Of a stretch of 64,000 bases of DNA, positions 3,781 through 22,017 are shown piece after piece. The notes beneath the pieces were generated by a model. It worked only from the letters and a program-made list of their open reading frames with translations. It did no database searches and was not told where the DNA came from. Position numbers and translations under genes: made by a program. The stretch's first letter is position 1, and every line of letters begins with the position of its first letter. The stretch comes from Podarcis muralis (taxonomy: Eukaryota). The DNA lies in NCBI RefSeq assembly GCF_964188315.1, contig NC_135662.1, forward strand, positions 24,242,001-24,306,000, given 5' to 3'.

Positions 3781-5704
3781 ATTGAACCTCCCCACTTTAA
3801 ATATTTCCATATTTCATTGGAAGCCAGAATTCAACACCCATTCTCCCATCCCTTCTGAAGAGAGAAGAGGTACAAAGAGCTGCTTTCTGTATGTACCTTT
3901 TCCCACTTATCAATGGAGAGGTAGCATATGTTGCACCATTTTGTGGTCCTGCCTCTTTTTTATGGGGTAGGCATTTGGTGTTATGCTACCATTTTGTGAT
4001 TGTTGCCAGGGGATTTTTCTAAAAATTCCAAATGTGCCATCTGGCCCAAAGAGGTTGGCAACTCTTAATGGTAGGTGGTCCCTTCAGTCTCAATCCCCAC
4101 CTACCCAATTTCATCCGTACCACAACCCTTACATTTTAACCCTGTGAGGAAGAGATAATTGACTACCCCAAAGTCACCCAGTGAGAATCCTAAGTGGGGT
4201 CAAGGAGAAGGGGGTGGCAGACCCATTGGGACATCCCAAGATGGGAACGGGTCAGTGGTTTTGTCTAATTGTGCTACACCAGATCAGGCTCCTCAGGAGA
4301 TCTGTGGGGCTTCAGATCCAGCAGATTCAAATTTGCTGGTGCCTTGTCCCTTTTGGACGCTTTCTGTGTGAATGAAGGTAGGGCCTCCGCAACAGTACTG
4401 GCAGAGAAATAGCTATATGTCATCCAAATTCTGTCCCCACCTAAACACCAGGCAGTGGGGAAAGACCTGTTTCTTAGCCAGGATTCGACCTGGTGGTCAT
4501 AGTCACTGCATGTATGTACAGTATTTCAAATATTAATATCCTACTTTTCCTTGTACAATCCAATGTGACTAATATGAGAAACACGAAATACACTAAAAAT
4601 TGACAAAGGAACAAATAAGAACAGCTACACAACAAAATACATTGCATGTTTCCATTGTTTTAAATGGCTTCAGTATACACATCCTAATAGGCCTTGCTTA
4701 AATTCATGTATTTATTTAACAAGATTGTATGCCACCTAACCAAAACAACTCTAAGCAGTTTACATAAAGTTATGTAAAACATTCATAGGAGAATACCAAT
4801 AAAATAACAGACTTTAAAAACAAGTAATTATGGCCTTTTTATGCATTATATAACCAGTACTCATACTTGGTTGCTGTGAGGTTGCTGCTGCTTCCTGTGC
4901 ATTCCTGGTGGCTTCCTTGAGATTGGCATATTTTCCATGCCAGTCCACAAGGTATGCTGCTCTCATGAGCCCCTTCAACCAAGAAAGCATTTCTTGGCAG
5001 CCTCTTCATAGCGACTGTAATTATGAAACTATGGTAGATGATTTCATATGACAAACAACATAAACTGTGGCTCAACAAATAAATCAAACGGGTGTTTTCA
5101 GTGTAAAAGGAAAGTCTTTGAGGGGAGAATGTTATCAATTGTCTTATTTGTTTGGTAAAATACCTTCACAATAGATAAATTTATTTTCTGGGGATGATGT
5201 TCTTTGAGTCAGAGTCTTAAGCTGCATGAAGTCTCTCATGTAGGTGCTGGCTGGACCACTACCAGTTTAGTTTCAGCGAGATGATGGCCCTACATGCCTT
5301 CAACCCATAACCTTGATTGCACTTCTGTAGAATTAAATAAGAAGTTGCCACGCAAAACAATGCGAAAAAGAACTGACAGTGAACAAATAAGTTTTGAAAC
5401 CTAGGGGGCTTTTTGGGGAGGGGAGTTGCTTTACGAATTAAAGTTTAGTTAAATGAGGTTGCTCTCCTATAGACCCTTACCTGTAAGCCCCACTGAACGC
5501 AGTGAGGCATATTTCTGAGTTGAATTGTACAGGATTGCACTGCAAACGTTTCCTTCTGTGACTATCTCAAGGAATTGTTCTATCAGGTCAAAGAGCATGT
5601 GATGCTGGTCACTGTTTAACACCAAATGATGCAATAGTGGTGGCATTTGCAACATACCAGTGGATAGATATGAATTACTAAGGACACTGGTTAAATGAAA
5701 CAAC

Positions 5705-6287
5705 TGTCACGCTGCAGGGCATGCCCTCGGGGGGGCTATGGTCTTGAGCCAAAGTCTAGCACAGAGAATCAGGCTAGGTCCAAAATGTGATCAAAACTAC
5801 ACCCAAGTTCAACATCACAGTGAATTCAGCAAGGTGAGGGAACTGGAAGCAGGACTAAGGATCCCACAAACAAGAAGAGATATCTGTGTTGTTTCCTACA
5901 ACTAGAAGGCTAATGTGTGAGACTCATACATAACACCCTAACCCCAGCTGCTGGTAGTAAAGGAGTTCCAACAATTGCTTACCATGTACAACGTCTTGGT
6001 CTGTAGACCCATGCTAGGTCATTGCTCTTCAGTCTGTGCCCAGGCCAATTGGTGCCAGAGTTATTCAGGACTGAGGGCTGGCTCAGTCTCTTCCTCTGAC
6101 AGCTCAAAGGGTTCTTCAGACAGTTTCTCACCAGACAGCCTGTCAAGGGGATCCTCAGCATTCATTCCAGGCGATCCAGCATAGACCTCAAAGTCCTCCA
6201 CCTTTGGGGTGTTGGTTTCACCCCTTCAAGTACTTAGTGCCAGTTCAGGGCTAGACATGGCACCGGTTTGTGTAAAGCTGTAAGACA
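5705..6287 (-). mobile_element. Solo LTR (Gypsy-like), 583 bp
   Basis: TGTC...GACA termini; 4-bp TSD CAAC at 5701-5704 and 6288-6291; orientation tentative. Confidence 0.6.
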
Positions 6288-6698
6288 CAACAGCCGTTTA
6301 TGTTCTGCCAGAAACCTTTGACATGCAATGCAAACATAAGTGAACACAAAGTGCACAACTCTTTCACGTTTACTGTAGAAATTTAAAACCTTACTTACAT
6401 TAGCGAAAACAGTGCAAGCCCTCAAATGTCTTAAAATCCAACCACCATCAAATGTTATCAAAACGCATTATGTCAGAGTAATCGTATTGAAACCACAGCC
6501 CTAATCATGATCACATTTCTGTTGTCAGACTTCATGAATCTGTGCCGTAGACACCCATTAACTTCTGCAAATGAGAGGCTGTGTATCTAGTTGTTCTAAT
6601 TATTTACAATATTTGCAATAAAGAGACTTCTAGTATGGTTTTTTTAAAAAATGTCAAGCACATGTGAAACACATCTGATTCCTGTACTGATTGCAGCT

Positions 6699-6839
6699 TG
6701 TTCACAGAGCAGACCAGGGCAGGTGTATAATCTAAAAGCTGGGTGGGGAATCTCAGGCCTGGGGCAAAACACCACCTACAAGGCAGGAATGGAGAACTTG
6801 CTGACCTCTGCACACCTCCCCTGGTCTGCTCTGTGAACA
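6699..6839. mobile_element. Non-autonomous TG...CA element with long inverted repeats (Ginger-like?)
   Basis: 25-bp perfect inverted repeat 6695-6719 / 6819-6843, extended by 6 more bp after one mismatch; can be read as TGTTCAC...GTGAACA with a 4-bp AGCT TSD. Confidence 0.5.
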
Positions 6840-7056
6840 AGCTCTTATCATTCCTAAACATTGGCCATGATGGCTTAGACTGATGGGAGTTGAAGGACCA
6901 TGGGTTCCCCACCCCTATTATAAAGGAATCTCCTACAATTGGCCTTGAATTGTATGATGGAATAAGAGGATATGTTCATAATAATCTAAGCTGTGCATGC
7001 ACTATAACTTTAAAGCACTTTGGAAACACATTCTTTCTCTCAAAAAAACTGGGTAC

Positions 7057-7467
7057 TGTAGTTAACCTCTCACACAACTAACATCACCAGCAACCTTAAC
7101 AAACTACAATGCCCAGAATTTCATGGCTTTTTACAAGACTGCATTTCTTAGAAGTGCAACAGCAGGGATCATTCAGTTAGCAACCGAAGGGTTAATTGTT
7201 TAGTTAGCCAACCTAGAGCGGGTGGTGGTGTTGCCTAGCAACCAGTGAGATTGGCACAATCCTTGCTGTGGTAACTCAAGCTCTGATTGGCTGGTTACGT
7301 CCAAAGGTGTTTCCTCCTTTGTGTAATTGTATGCCTCCCTATGTACTAGATCTGAATTAAGAAACTTCTCTGTATATTTCTGTATAGTTCAGTTTCCCCT
7401 AGTAAAGTATTACCAATTTCTTTTCTCTCTGGACTCCATTTGTGTTATTCGAGTGACTCTTCTAACA
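7057..7467 (+). mobile_element. Probable solo LTR, 411 bp
   Basis: TGT...ACA termini; imperfect 4-bp TSD GTAC/GTAT; AGTAAA signal followed by a GT-rich tract near the 3' end. Confidence 0.4.
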
Positions 7468-8139
7468 GTATTACTCATGTTTAAACTGGGCATTGAATGT
7501 TTTTGGATATGCTCAAATTGACAATAAGCATCAGGATTTTCTCTGCCCTCCAGCGGACTTCATTCCTTTATCCATTTTTGTTCTGGAACTGTTTTTTGAT
7601 TGGATGGCTGAGTGACAAGAAATGTTGATGCTGATTCAGCAAATGCCAACCTTGTTAGTATCCCAAATTCCAGATTTGCTCACTTTGGAACAATGAGGCA
7701 TAGTTGTTTTCCTGACAATAAATGAATAGGACAGTGCATGAACCAGGGAAAATTGAATGAACATGTTTACACTTGCTTTAAATATGATCATTATCATAAA
7801 GCTCAGTCTGCCACTTTTAATACCCATAGAAAGAAAAGTAATTCGTGTGGGTGCCAGAATGGAATTCTAATAAAGCTTTCTCATTTGTCTGAGGGTGCAA
7901 ATGTACAAAAGCAATAAGTTTAATATCTGCCTGTTTATAGGGCATGTCAAAACAGCTCTGGCAGCTTTTAGAGTAATGCAAAGATTAGGATGTCCACACT
8001 GATAAAACACAGCTGGACTAGTAAGTCTAAAAGAAGCCAAATCAAATCCATGTGAGAGAAATATGCATTCTGTGTGGCATAAATTTAAGCACAAATTATC
8101 CCCAGGTTTGCCATCTTTGATAGCAATAGATTATAAAGA

Positions 8140-8584
8140 AAACAAGAGTGAGTCTTGTGGCACCTTAAAGACTAACAAATGCATTAAGATTTTATGGGCT
8201 ACAGTCCACGCCATCAAACGTATGAAGTGTTTTTCTGAGTGGCAGCTATATATACACATAGTGAAGGGAGTAGGGAATTGTAAACAGTGAGGTCAGAAGG
8301 AAAGGAAATGCAGAAAGTTGCGCTATTTTGCAGTGTCCAGAAACTGAACTGCTTGCAAAGACTGGCTTAGTCTTAGGTTGTTGGCACAGTGGAATTTGTT
8401 GAAGCCTTATAGAAACTGCATTAAGTGCCTCCTGTTCAGGTGATCAAGATGGAATCCATGTATCTTGGGTAGAAGTGAGACTTTTTGGAGACAGCAGCTA
8501 AGTGTTGTTCTAACCAGTCATGAAAATGTTGGCATACTGTGGAGTCATGTGGGAGCCCATGACAGGGCCATTGATTTGAATATA
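8140..8584 (-). mobile_element. Penelope-like retroelement relic, 3' part (RT fragment plus 3' tail with a degenerate hammerhead motif)
   Basis: Minus strand reads YIQINGPVMGSHMTPQYANIFM..LEQH..RYMDS..FNKFHCANNLRLSQSLQAVQFLDT, resembling PLE RT GTAMG/YANIFM/RYIDD/FLD motifs; tail ttagtctttaaggtgccacaagactc typical of sauropsid PLEs. Confidence 0.7.
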
Positions 8585-8855
8585 CAAAGGTACCTTGGTT
8601 CTCGAACTTAATCCGTTCGACTTCCAAAACATTTGAAAACCAAGGCGCACTTTCCCATAGAAAATAATGCAAAAAGGATTAATCTGTTCCAGACTTTTAA
8701 AAACAACCCCTAAAACAGAAATTTAACGTGAATTTTATTATCTAACGAGACCATTGATCCATAAAATGAAAGCAATAAACAATGTGCTGTACTGTAAAAT
8801 AAAACAGTATTGTAGATAAAAATGTATTTTTTTTTCTTACCTTCATGGATGATAG

Positions 8856-9932
8856 TCATTGTTTGGATGGAGGGTCAGGGTCCTCTTCTGGAATTGCAAT
8901 CGGTGACTCCTCTCCTGCCATTCCTTCCCTTGCTTTTCTTACACCACTGACACCTGGTTCAGACCCACTGATAATTTTCCTCACTATTTTTTTTTCAGTT
9001 GAGATTTGCTTTTGCTGATGTTTTAAAATTTGCCTAAAGTGAGACATAGCATTATCATTGAAAGTGTTGGCGGCATGACTTACAGCAGCTTTATCAGGGT
9101 GATATTTTTCAACAAAACTTTGCACTTCAGCCCATTTTGCACACATTTCTCTGATCAGTGCAGTAGATACAATTTCTCTGCTCTCCTCCTCTGAAGGTAG
9201 TTCCTCAGTTGCCGCCTGTTGCTGCTCCGTCAGAATGTTTTGTTCTTCTTCTGTGGCGAGCTCAGTCTTGTGGTCCTCCACTAACTCCTCCACATCACCA
9301 CTATTCACTTGCAATGATTTCTCCTCCTTTGTTATGTAGGTCCTCTTTGGCATTTTCTTCCGAAATAGGCCTGTCTCATCACAGTTGAAAACTTGTTGGG
9401 GAATGAAACCCTGTGACTCAACATAATCTTTAAAATCCAAAACAAATCGGTCAGCATCCAATTTGTTGGCACTGGCAGCTTCGCCATGTCTCACCACACT
9501 GTGTATGCCACTTCTCCTCTTAAAATTATCAAACCAACCTCTACTTGCCTTGAAAACCTCACCCTCAGCACTTGCTCCAGGGGTGTTTCTGATGAGTTCA
9601 GCATGCAAATGTAAAGCTTTTTCACAAATCATGCTCTCAGAAATGCTGTCACCGGCCAACTGTTTTTCTTTTATCCATGTTAAAAGCAGTTTTTCCACTT
9701 CTTCAATTGTCTGTGTCCGTTGCCTTGTGAGTGTTTTAACACCTTTTGCAACATTGGCACCTTTAATGGCTTCCTTATTTTTTAAGATGGTACAAATTGT
9801 AGATTTGGCCATACCAAACTGCGTTGCCAGGTCACTTACACGGACACCGCTTTCATGCTTGGAAATAATTTTCTTCTTCACCTCTATTGTTGCTCTGTTA
9901 ATGGTTCTCTTGCCTTTGCAACTTTTATCCAT
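8856..9932 (-). CDS. Tigger (TIGD1-like) transposase lacking most of the DDD core; 358 aa from the first ATG
   Basis: N-terminal HTH (TIEVKKKII...STICTILKNKE), CENP-B/Tc5 HTH (FKASRGWFDNFKRR), first catalytic motif QVFNCDETGLF, then a direct in-frame join EEKSL|QVNSGDVEELV into the C-terminal region; no stops. Confidence 0.85.
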   Translation of the reverse strand: MDKSCKGKRTINRATIEVKKKIISKHESGVRVSDLATQFGMAKSTICTILKNKEAIKGANVAKGVKTLTRQRTQTIEEVEKLLLTWIKEKQLAGDSISESMICEKALHLHAELIRNTPGASAEGEVFKASRGWFDNFKRRSGIHSVVRHGEAASANKLDADRFVLDFKDYVESQGFIPQQVFNCDETGLFRKKMPKRTYITKEEKSLQVNSGDVEELVEDHKTELATEEEQNILTEQQQAATEELPSEEESREIVSTALIREMCAKWAEVQSFVEKYHPDKAAVSHAANTFNDNAMSHFRQILKHQQKQISTEKKIVRKIISGSEPGVSGVRKAREGMAGEESPIAIPEEDPDPPSKQ

Positions 9933-10024
9933 TTTCGCACAGTCACACAATCAAATTGCAAGAGTGCTCCTGAAAATAACAGTAGCTGAACTGGGTTCCA
10001 CAGAGTCACAAAAAAAATATTAAC

Positions 10025-10135
10025 CAAAATACTCGCAGAAACAAAATCGCCAAATAAGTTGCAGAAACAAAATCGCCAAGTAAGTCGCTGAAACAAAATC
10101 GCCAAATAAATCGCAAAAAGAGAATTGCCAAATAT
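10025..10135. repeat. 26-bp subterminal tandem repeat, about 4 copies, inside the Tigger element
   Basis: caaaatcgccaaataagttgcagaaa / caaaatcgccaagtaagtcgctgaaa / caaaatcgccaaataaatcgcaaaaa plus partial flanking units. Confidence 0.8.
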
Positions 10136-10306
10136 AAGCTCCAAATATCACCAGCGTGTTGCACAGGTCCTCAGCGGAAGCACTCAGAATGGAAGCATTC
10201 AGCTTCCGAAAAAAGTTCACAAACCGGAACACTTACTTCCGGGTTTGTGGCATTCAGGTTCCGATTTGTTCGTCAACTAAGCCGTTCGAGAACCAAGGTT
10301 CCACTG

Positions 10307-10395
10307 TACATGTTCTCACCATAGCTGAAATCATTCTAGGTAAGTACAAAGCAGCAAAATTCAGTGGCCTGGTGTAGTTGTTGCCCCATCTACAC
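10307..10395 (-). mobile_element. Penelope RT relic, 5' part (continues across the Tigger insertion)
   Basis: Reads QATEFCCFVLT*NDFSYGENM and joins YIQINGPVMG in frame once the Tigger and one TA are removed. Confidence 0.7.
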
Positions 10396-10835
10396 TGAAA
10401 ATAGAATTTCAAGATTAAGTGCTAGTGCTGCTTTGCTTTGAATTAAGTCGTTTGTTTACTCCAGAGTAATATGCTTTACATTTTTTTTTAATTTAAGCAG
10501 CCATGTCTTTCTTCACAATACATTTTGACCATAGATCATATTAAGACGGAGGACTCCCCCCCCCCAACACCTGAATTATATGCCTTTTTATTTGAGCATA
10601 TCCTTTCAAGCACAAGTGCAGCCTAAGTTAACAGGCCATGCCCCGAGGATGGCTCGAGTCGCTCTCATTTACAGAGCTTGCTCTCTGCGGAGAGAAGCAA
10701 AGAGAGGGGGCTGCTCAGGCCAAGTGCGGCATAGAGATAGAAAAACGTAAAGACGCCGCCTTTCGTCTTCCAGAGCCTGGATGGAGGGAGCCGCCTCAAA
10801 CTCCTTTCAGAATGGCCGTTACAGTTCTTCTCTGT

Positions 10836-10936
10836 CAGCCTTCTCCAGACAAACCTTGGGTCCTACAACAGGGGATCAAGTATGATGGGGAGCGTAGTCC
10901 CAACACCGTTTGAGGCACCAAGGTTAAGAACGCCTG
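10836..10936. mobile_element. Degenerate hAT-type MITE
   Basis: Ends cagccttct... / ...ggttaagaacgcctg and internal gatgggagcgtagtcccaac resemble the palindromic hAT MITEs elsewhere in the window; no TSD seen. Confidence 0.4.
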
Positions 10937-11227
10937 TCATAAGCTTTTTTCTATCTCTATGGTACCATCTCGAGGCTTGTGCGCATGGTCCATGCAACGC
11001 ACTTCCCGTTTGGCCACGGCGAGTGGGCGGAAATTTCCCCCTCTCTCGAGCGGTTCTCGGCGGCCGGGCGAGAAAGCCTGTTATAGACTTTTTTCTATCT
11101 CTATGGTACCATCTTAAGGCTTGTGCGCATGCTCCACGCAAGGCACTTCCCGTTTGGGAAATTGGCCACGGGGAGTGGGCGGAAATTTCCCCCTCTCGCG
11201 AGCTTAGCCGTTCGCGGCGGCCGGGCG
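10927..11227 (+). promoter_or_regulatory. RPL30 proximal promoter, present as a two-copy tandem duplication (144 and 157 bp)
   Basis: Identical 27-bp (10944/11088) and 25-bp (11021/11173) blocks; NRF1-like TGCGCATG, ETS/GABP-like CACTTCCCG and GCGGAAAT, GC box. Confidence 0.8.
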
Positions 11228-11260
11228 CCGCGTGGTTTTGCGCGTTGCATTGCGGGAGCT

Positions 11261-11304
11261 CCTTCCTTTCCTCGCGGCCCGGCCATCTTGGAGGTGCCTC
11301 TCTG
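11261..11304 (+). promoter_or_regulatory. RPL30: RPL30 non-coding exon 1 with 5'TOP tract and YY1-like site
   Basis: CCTTCCTTTCCTC pyrimidine tract; GGCCATCTTG at 11281-11290; donor G|GTAAGC at 11305. Confidence 0.8.
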
Positions 11305-20628: not shown

Positions 20629-20870
20629 CAGTAGTACCTTGGTTCTCAAAGGGCTTAGTTGTTGAACAAATTGGCTCCCGAACACCACAAACCCGGAAGT
20701 AAGTGCTCTGGTTTGTGAACGCTTTTAGGAAGCCGAACATCTGACACGGCTTCCAATTGAGTGCAGGAAGCTCCTGCAGCCAATCGGAAGCCGCGTCTTG
20801 GTTTTCGAATGGTTTCAGGAGTCGAACGGACTCCCAGAACAGATTAAGTTTGAGAACCAAGGTACCACTG
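20629..20870. mobile_element. Tigger-derived MITE, family A (242 bp)
   Basis: CAGTAGTACCTTGG / CCAAGGTACCACTG TIRs, TA on the right; both ends homologous to the ends of the 8585-10306 element. Confidence 0.88.
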
Positions 20871-22017
20871 TACTTTGTTTTTAGATTACGCATTAATGTG
20901 TCATCTTAGAAGAAGGATTCTTACTTGGTGAGAGAAGAGAGGGGGCAACACCACTTTTAAAGATTGTGCTTGCAGTCTACAGTTTTTTAAAAGTATTGCA
21001 TTAAAATATTTTTAAAAACCCTCAATCTGCTGCCTAATTAATTGGGGACAGCTTTAGTTTTTAAAAAATGGTTTAATCGGTTACAATCCTGGTAAGAAGT
21101 AGAATTGTGTGTGCCAGGCAGCATGATAAGCACTTGGGTTTTCAAAACAGATGCAGCACTAGTTATCTCCAGCTCTTATTGGGACATTTTCATACATGGC
21201 ACTAAAAAGCGCAAGTGAGATTCTTTTGAGCATTTGTGTCATGTATGAATGCAAGTAATGAACGTGGGAGAGAATATGGAAGATAAATTGAATGCATCTC
21301 CTAGCCAGTGCAGGGTTTACATTCATGTTAGCAGCTGACCTGAGAGAATAGCGGCCGCCAGGAAGAAATTAAAATAAGCAATAGAAAGCCAGATCCATGG
21401 CTCAAAGAACTGGAATAAAATACTTCAAGCCTGGAGTCGTTCATTTCTGAATTTGTCTACTCATTTTTATTCTAAAAATCACTATGCCAAAGAATATGTT
21501 TTTACTGTGACTTCGTCCTTGTTGCACTCAGTGCTGCCTGTGTCCTTCCCCTGTATTCCATCATAATTCCCTCAGATGTGACTAATACTGACCAACAGGC
21601 CATCTTAACAGAAAACTATAAATTACCAAATATCCCCAAAGGGATGGATTGTGCATGGTGTAGTTGTTTTTTAGAACTACTGGTGATCTTTCTGCAGTAT
21701 ATAGGAAGGGGAGGGCGTTGCCAGTTCTCCTGGGTTTCTTGAGTTGTACATTTCATACATGACTTGTTAAAAGCTGGCAGAAGTAGTAGAAATGATTGTA
21801 TATGTCCCTGGCATTAGAATAAAGTCAAATATTCCCCGAGTGATAAACAGCTGAAATATTACTCTTCCCAGTGGCTCATTGGTCATTGTGTTTTACACGT
21901 ATCCCTCTGATTTCTGCAGATGTTCAAGACAAATGGTTAGATCGCTTCTGCCAGGCCACAAACTTCTGTCTGCATTAATTGCTCATACAAGTAAACTAAA
22001 TCTGGGACAATTATTAC

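Follow-up and report, generated by a model that had tools for sequence, protein, structure and literature searches.

A probable host gene derived from a Tigger transposon that lost its catalytic core, upstream of ERICH5 in lacertid lizards

The locus

The window analysed here, a stretch of 64,000 nucleotides of Podarcis muralis DNA (NCBI RefSeq assembly GCF_964188315.1, contig NC_135662.1, positions 24,242,001 to 24,306,000 of the forward strand), carries at 8585-10306 an element derived from a Tigger transposon (pogo superfamily), the longest open reading frame (ORF) of which predicts a protein of 358 amino acids (aa) that has a helix-turn-helix (HTH) DNA-binding region and no catalytic DDE (Asp-Asp-Glu) core. 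The element lies between RPL30 and ERICH5. On the plus strand, exon 1 of RPL30 begins near 11261, which leaves about 955 bp between it and the element, and the ORF faces the other way, as had been described in an original prediction made from the sequence letters, which placed RPL30 about 1 kb away; ERICH5 starts at 2290, and the Tigger-derived gene is 6.5 kb upstream of that start in the same orientation. The same prediction had offered either a repressor or a domesticated DNA-binding protein, and the latter option is supported by orthology, selection and expression: we consider it likely that the locus is a selected, expressed host gene for a non-catalytic DNA-binding protein. The element has the short terminal inverted repeats (TIRs) and the TA target-site duplication that characterize pogo/Tigger transposons, and is organized as follows.

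8585-10306, minus strand: Tigger/pogo-derived element, 1722 bp, delimited by its inverted-repeat pair
8583-8584 and 10307-10308: TA target-site duplications on both flanks of the Tigger element
10284-10306, minus strand: 5' TIR, 23 nt, CAGTGGAACCTTGGTTCTCGAAC, nearly invariant across the four orthologues
8585-8607, minus strand: 3' TIR, 23 nt, unlike the 5' TIR at 3 positions
8856-9932, minus strand: 358-aa ORF, the longest of the element, including the stop codon at 8856-8858
9510-9893, minus strand: CENP-B-like bipartite HTH DNA-binding domain, aa 14-141 (Pfam, 1HLV, Foldseek)
9306-9395, minus strand: remnant of the start of DDE_1, aa 180-209, with the first Asp motif NCDETG retained; predicted disordered
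9308-9314, minus strand: deletion junction with TTG microhomology, where 690 bp (230 codons) of the DDE core are gone
8967-9164, minus strand: C-terminal two-helix hairpin, aa 257-322, conserved in Tigger1-like transposases; predicted local distance difference test score (pLDDT) of about 95

The three differences between the TIRs had been read correctly in the original prediction, and comparison with the orthologues shows that two of them are derived in the window's own lineage. TIR pairs match at 20-22 of 23 positions; with the catalytic core lost, recognition of the ends in trans is possible in principle.

A reading frame with its DNA-binding region and without its DDE core

Two starts are available to the ORF, an ATG at 9930-9932 in a favourable Kozak context (AAAATGG), which gives 358 aa, and an upstream TTG, which gives 364 aa. 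Pfam identified HTH_Tnp_Tc5 (E = 1e-13) and placed CENP-B_N at 18.3 bits, under the cut-off of 21.2, and residues 14-141 matched the DNA-binding domain of CENP-B (1HLV) with both HTHs spanned (E = 6e-11). DDE_1 had no Pfam match in the 358-aa ORF, which does not hold the complete acidic triad of an autonomous element, and an NCBIfam scan returned noise matches only. In an AlphaFold2 prediction based on a 78-sequence alignment, the HTH units were confident (helices 16-58 and 74-141, with pLDDT mostly >85 across the DNA-binding domain) and were followed by an extra helix at 157-174; residues 180-209 and the tail were disordered, and the acidic stretch was of low confidence. The sole significant Foldseek match in the PDB was 1hlv, the structure of CENP-B(1-129) on DNA, and the C-terminal hairpin had no significant match there. 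Residues of the hairpin are among the invariant columns in all aligned Tigger1-like transposases.

Compared with full-length Tigger transposases of lacertids, bats and snakes, the ORF has a single gap of about 230 residues, from ITKEEKSL to (G)LEVSGDDVEEL, which measures exactly 690 bp against a full-length element of Zootoca (85-88% DNA identity) and removes catalytic acidic residues 2 and 3. Splicing was ruled out as the source of this loss, because the junction is present in the genomic DNA of four lizards and the breakpoints of the full-length relative carry no GT/AG. Pfam, 1HLV and the alignments all bear out the earlier description of a 358-aa ORF that keeps both HTHs and NCDETG and has lost the DDE core in frame at 9308-9314. 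Judged from its sequence, the 358-aa product is a predicted protein without the capacity to cut.

One orthologous locus in four lacertids

A word-index protein search recovered full-coverage proteins of the same length from Podarcis lilfordi (94% identical), Lacerta agilis (92%) and Zootoca vivipara (89%), and a single protein with the junction appeared per annotated lacertid proteome. In all three species the locus has the order MATN2, RPL30 (opposite strand), ORF and ERICH5, and the window is collinear with the three loci over about 20 kb at 89-95% identity. Base-level alignments revealed the identical insertion point, target-site duplication and deletion junction in the four lacertids, which represent three genera; both the insertion and the deletion are therefore older than the Podarcis/Lacerta/Zootoca split, and the youth that the original prediction had implied for this copy is wrong. 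On these alignments, the gene is a single orthologous and syntenic locus common to several species.

Two RefSeq annotations and one GenBank annotation give the orthologues the automatic label 'tigger transposable element-derived protein 1-like'; in Zootoca, the records XP_034981426.1 and XP_034981427.1 were named 'glutamate-rich protein 5 isoform X1', and their.2 versions bear the TIGD1-like label. The nearest relatives by sequence are lacertid Tigger transposases (about 80% aa identity) and not a TIGD orthologue. A literature search yielded no paper on this lacertid gene and none joining Tigger with Podarcis, and a search on domesticated pogo/Tigger genes in lizards yielded a general review only.

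Selection on the protein and protection of the frame

Selection was estimated by codon maximum likelihood (ML), with a GY94-type likelihood, F3x4 frequencies and the tree ((window, P. lilfordi),(Lacerta, Zootoca)), as the ratio of non-synonymous to synonymous substitution rates (dN/dS, omega), with the following results.

aa 1-205: omega 0.25, p = 3e-4 against omega 1 (likelihood-ratio test, 13.05)
aa 1-150, the two HTH units: omega 0.23, p = 5e-4
aa 206-358: omega 1.01, not significant
aa 206-250, the acidic linker: omega about 3, p = 0.07
Whole ORF: omega 0.60, p = 0.023

Pairwise dS (0.06-0.12, Nei-Gojobori) is close to the non-coding divergence in and beside the element (0.045-0.12). Since synonymous sites evolve at the neutral rate and non-synonymous sites are depressed in the DNA-binding half, the constraint acts at the level of the protein. 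In the four-way alignment, 28 indel blocks were counted in 1042 columns of flanking non-coding DNA, with lengths that would break a frame in 21 cases, and the 1077 columns of the ORF contain one 3-bp block only; at the non-coding rate, about 22 frame-breaking indels would be expected in the ORF and about 9 in its C-terminal half. A neutral simulation gave P = 0.015 for zero stop codons in three lineages. The whole reading frame is shielded from indels and stops, and amino-acid constraint is clear for the DNA-binding half only.

Variants in RNA from the same species agree with this contrast and comprised three synonymous changes in the DNA-binding half (runs X23, X24 and X2), and five non-synonymous and three synonymous changes in the C-terminal half. 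A cluster at codons 84-85 (two non-synonymous and one synonymous), which lies near a contig end and occurs in run X2 only, may derive from a paralogue.

A spliced sense transcript that starts in host DNA

RNA was analysed across 5300-11240 in two raw stranded runs (X23 and X24) and in contig sets X1 and X2, both of which behave as RNA. All four cover the unique interior of the ORF (8882-9876), and in the raw runs this cover consists of first-mate-on-plus pairs only, which under the usual library chemistry identifies the RNA as a minus-strand product in the sense orientation of the ORF. Expression is low, at a depth of 1-4.5 with about 12% of reads sampled. The transcript has the following structure.

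8841-10460, minus strand: exon 1, 5' end near 10460 (RNA cover and contigs)
6278-8840, minus strand: intron, GT..AG, joint 6277|8841
4700-6277, minus strand: exon 2, non-coding 3' untranslated region, end approximate (cover over 5300-6277 and a contig)

Exon 1 begins about 155 bp beyond the 5' TIR, in host DNA, and cover stops between 10473 and 10474, which places the transcript start in host DNA and not at the RPL30 promoter. A bidirectional RPL30 promoter was accordingly ruled out as the driver, there being zero RNA cover over 10474-11240 in the four runs. The joint 6277|8841 (CT..AC on the plus strand) is found in X1, X2 and X24, which are from three studies, and cover across the intron is at or near zero. 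The donor (GAAG|GTAAG), which follows the stop codon by 15 nt, is identical in the four species; the acceptor was examined in two orthologues, those of P. lilfordi and L. agilis, and is conserved in both. Downstream, a 1597-nt contig extends about 530 nt past 5300, to about 4770, and AATAAA signals occupy 5180-5185 and 4711-4716 on the minus strand. Nonsense-mediated decay follows a 50-nt rule, and with a stop codon so near the last exon junction it is not expected here. A predicted acceptor near 9969 (TTTTCAG|G) was dropped, as a unique 422-nt contig reads through 9793-10214. The locus is the source of a defined, spliced, sense mRNA, and the protein that it encodes is a predicted one.

Related transposases and miniature elements

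Lacertid genomes contain intact full-length Tigger transposases with DDE_1 and 75-80% protein identity, and each of the two relatives examined yielded one TIR-like end, which departs from the element's TIR at 3 of 23 positions in one relative and at 5 in the other. In the RNA data, the ends of the element (8484-8881 and 9877-10274) are covered 10-600 times more deeply than the interior, which has unique-level depth in the contigs, and on both strands, and joints such as 8789|9980, with foreign letters in between, are present in the runs; together these imply many short miniature inverted-repeat transposable elements (MITEs) elsewhere with the same ends. One is in the window, and the leader of the element itself contains a tandem repeat:

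20631-20872, plus strand: 242-bp MITE whose two ends, 5' and 3', are those of this Tigger family (sequence match)
10033-10134, minus strand: 26-bp tandem repeat, 3.9 copies, in the 5' leader of the element

The number of repeat units varies, from 3.9 in the window through about 3 in P. lilfordi to about 2 in L. agilis, and the repeat could form a set of subterminal transposase-binding sites.

Just downstream of the element (near window position 8458), P. lilfordi alone carries about 300 bp of inserted DNA whose Tigger-like end (CAGTGGTGCCTCGCAAGACGA) is a different one, and this suggests recent MITE activity in Podarcis. Tigger transposases of the bats Miniopterus, Molossus and Myotis are 70-74% identical to the lizard ORF over shared parts, nearer than most other reptile matches; this closeness may reflect horizontal transfer of this Tigger lineage.

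Origin, proposed function and alternative explanations

The best explanation overall, to which we assign a probability of roughly 0.78, is a host gene specific to lacertids, which goes back to a single Tigger (pogo superfamily) insertion. The insertion took place before the Podarcis/Lacerta/Zootoca split, and a microhomology-mediated deletion of 690 bp stripped the DDE core in frame, leaving a product composed of the CENP-B-like double HTH, the acidic linker and the C-terminal helical hairpin. The 358-aa protein is expected to bind DNA sequence-specifically without cutting it, the likeliest targets being the ends of its own Tigger family and the abundant MITEs derived from it, and the hairpin probably serves for pairing, between copies of the protein or between it and full-length Tigger transposases. 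The protein may function to damp the mobilization of Tigger elements and MITEs, or to act as a regulator at sites dispersed by MITEs; within the host-gene explanation, we see roughly even odds for repressor and regulator.

Several observations weigh against a host gene. The exact 358-aa product is absent from the gene-call collection in an exact-sequence look-up, and the homologue search gave no match identical to the ORF of the window. TIR preservation as good as this is unusual for an old domesticated gene, and the leader has up to six short upstream ORFs if the start is really near 10460. The selection estimates rest on four species with short branches, the whole-ORF omega of 0.60 is of modest significance (p = 0.023), and with an omega of about 1.0 in the C-terminal half, constraint is demonstrable there on the frame only and not on residues.

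The same C-terminal omega, together with the low expression and the still recognizable TIRs and target-site duplications, is what might be seen in a neutral relic, that is, a dead non-autonomous deletion derivative with an ORF open by chance (one third of random deletions are in frame) and transcription by read-through or noise. We nevertheless consider this extremely improbable, because four orthologous ORFs are intact despite the roughly 22 frame-breaking indels expected, the chance of zero stops in three lineages is 0.015, and the transcript is spliced and strand-specific with conserved splice sites. The original prediction had named neutral dN/dS, disabling mutations and lack of expression as signs of a dead derivative; instead, the DNA-binding half is not neutral (omega 0.25, p = 3e-4), no disabling mutation was found in the orthologues of the three other lacertids, and spliced sense RNA covers the ORF. 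An alternative interpretation is that selection acts on the RNA or the locus and not on the protein, for example if an upstream ORF or a non-coding transcript regulated ERICH5 or RPL30 and the 358-aa ORF were no more than tolerated. The position of the gene upstream of ERICH5 in the same orientation would suit this, and the older Zootoca record named as an ERICH5 isoform is a hint that in one annotation build the transcript had been joined to ERICH5, but we regard it as very unlikely because the depression of non-synonymous sites in the DNA-binding half alongside neutral synonymous sites argues for the protein, and because in the window's species the transcript apparently ends well short of ERICH5, near the poly(A) signals at 5185 and 4716.

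A further possibility carries more weight. The P-element derivative KP is an internally deleted, mobile, multicopy element that spread recently and encodes a DNA-binding, non-catalytic protein; the lizard product could be a repressor of this type, which occupies Tigger and MITE ends or poisons the transposase multimers of a still-active family. Like KP, the lizard gene has an internal deletion that spares the N-terminal DNA-binding and oligomerization parts, and here also the C-terminal hairpin, and abolishes catalysis; competition at transposon ends is plausible. Intact DDE_1 Tigger transposases 75-80% identical to it are present in lacertid genomes, and MITEs with the element's ends are abundant in the transcript data, with one in the window; the fast evolution of the linker (aa 206-250, omega about 3, p = 0.07) might fit a conflict, although the excess over 1 is not significant. 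However, KP is a spreading element, and the lizard gene appears to be one locus, fixed through the Podarcis-Lacerta-Zootoca divergence and with a host-type transcript structure. Moreover, cross-recognition is uncertain, given a DNA divergence of 12-18% from the closest intact transposases and TIRs that differ from theirs at 3-5 of 23 positions. We treat a KP-type repressor as possible but on the doubtful side.

Similar genes in rodents and bichirs

Tigger-derived ORFs without DDE were also found in two hystricognath rodents and in bichirs. In Cavia porcellus (XP_005003688) and Octodon degus (XP_023575288) the ORF has 363/364 aa and the junction EEKALPG|(H/Q)SEQQ, which lies within one genomic exon (shown in Octodon). 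In transcript contigs of Cavia, splicing removes the equivalent of a 54-kb intron that begins about 20 nt short of the stop codon, the last seven codons lying in exon 2. Between Cavia and Octodon, dS is 0.30 and dN is 0.072 (omega 0.24, p = 4e-12), and both halves are constrained. The bichirs Erpetoichthys and Polypterus have in common a protein of about 575 aa, 84% identical between them, composed of an N-terminal extension (about 230 aa) and, fused to it, a DDE-less Tigger with the junction EEKAMP|PVVDEI; from its sequence, it is a candidate host-transposase fusion outside tetrapods.

These genes and the lizard gene all retain the DNA-binding domain, the remnant with the first Asp and the C-terminal hairpin, and have their left breakpoints right after ...EEK(A/S)LP..., but they do not share their right breakpoints and are only about 50% identical to the lizard protein, so the lizard, rodent and bichir genes look independent. 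The rodent genes further resemble the lizard gene in a genomic junction, purifying selection, splicing of the RNA close to the stop codon, on its upstream side in the rodents, and the replacement of the GLFWKK Trp by Arg. The bichir proteins are set apart from the lizard protein by their 230-aa N-terminal extension.

The original prediction had pointed out that GLFWKK reads GLFRKK in the window's ORF, and it does. The Trp position (window codon 192, 9357-9359) is Arg in three lacertid orthologues, Gln in Zootoca, Gly in Polypterus and Arg in the rodent genes, and its replacement may be a convergent loss of a buried residue after removal of the RNase-H fold.

We tentatively suggest, with somewhat less than even confidence, that DDE-less Tigger proteins with a CENP-B-like domain and the hairpin constitute a recurrent, uncatalogued class of host genes in lacertids, hystricognaths and bichirs, kept for binding Tigger and MITE ends. 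An origin by independent genomic deletions just after the first catalytic Asp is held with similar reserve, and so is the proposal that the members act as heritable anti-transposon repressors or as regulators at MITE-dispersed sites.

Relation to known domesticated transposases

That proteins of this kind start out as repressors of transposition is a long-standing idea, and the presence of intact Tigger transposases and abundant MITEs in the same genomes as the lizard gene makes this idea directly testable here. The gene represents an early stage of transposase domestication, in which TIRs, duplications and the deletion scar are readable and host transcript structure and selection are already present. 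Considered alongside the parallel cases in rodents and bichirs, it suggests that KP-like deletion derivatives can become host genes by a route that is repeatable.

With CENPB, TIGD2-7, JRK, JRKL, POGK and POGZ, the lizard gene has in common a Tigger/pogo origin, the module in which CENP-B_N is paired with HTH_Tnp_Tc5, a fixed orthologous locus, purifying selection and expression. It did not prove to be a member of the TIGD, CENP-B or JRK groups, as the full-length proteins that match it best are Tigger transposases of lacertids and bats, and DDE_1 is absent. The pogo-derived genes of vertebrates have been catalogued, and every one of them is reported to keep its DDE domain and most to stem from complete transposases (Gao et al. 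2020, PMC7386202). The lizard gene departs from this published rule, having its DDE core deleted, and is much younger than the catalogued set and known so far from Lacertini only. Co-option of a Tc1/mariner DNA-binding module has been described in Drosophila for CG4570, cag, toy and a recent gene of the obscura group, a set that includes a lineage-restricted gene under mild purifying selection (Guseva et al. 2026, PMC13548663). As in the lizard gene, the DNA-binding module was retained and catalysis lost; the lizard gene differs from the Drosophila set in its pogo/Tigger branch, its squamate host, the hairpin kept from beyond the DDE region, and its visible TIRs and duplications.

Other observations near the element

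A tandem duplication at 10927-11203 (unit of about 144-152 bp, copies 90-95% identical) lies directly upstream of RPL30 exon 1; each copy contains the motif GGGCGGAAATTTCC, and the copy structure varies among the orthologues. On the other side of the element, the 125 bp at 8460-8584, which adjoin the 3' TIR and are intronic, show 1-2 differences among the window, P. lilfordi and L. agilis, where about 6-11 would be expected at the rate of neighbouring DNA; their translation (..NGPVMGSHMTPQYANIFM..RYMDS..) appears to resemble a fragment of a reverse transcriptase.

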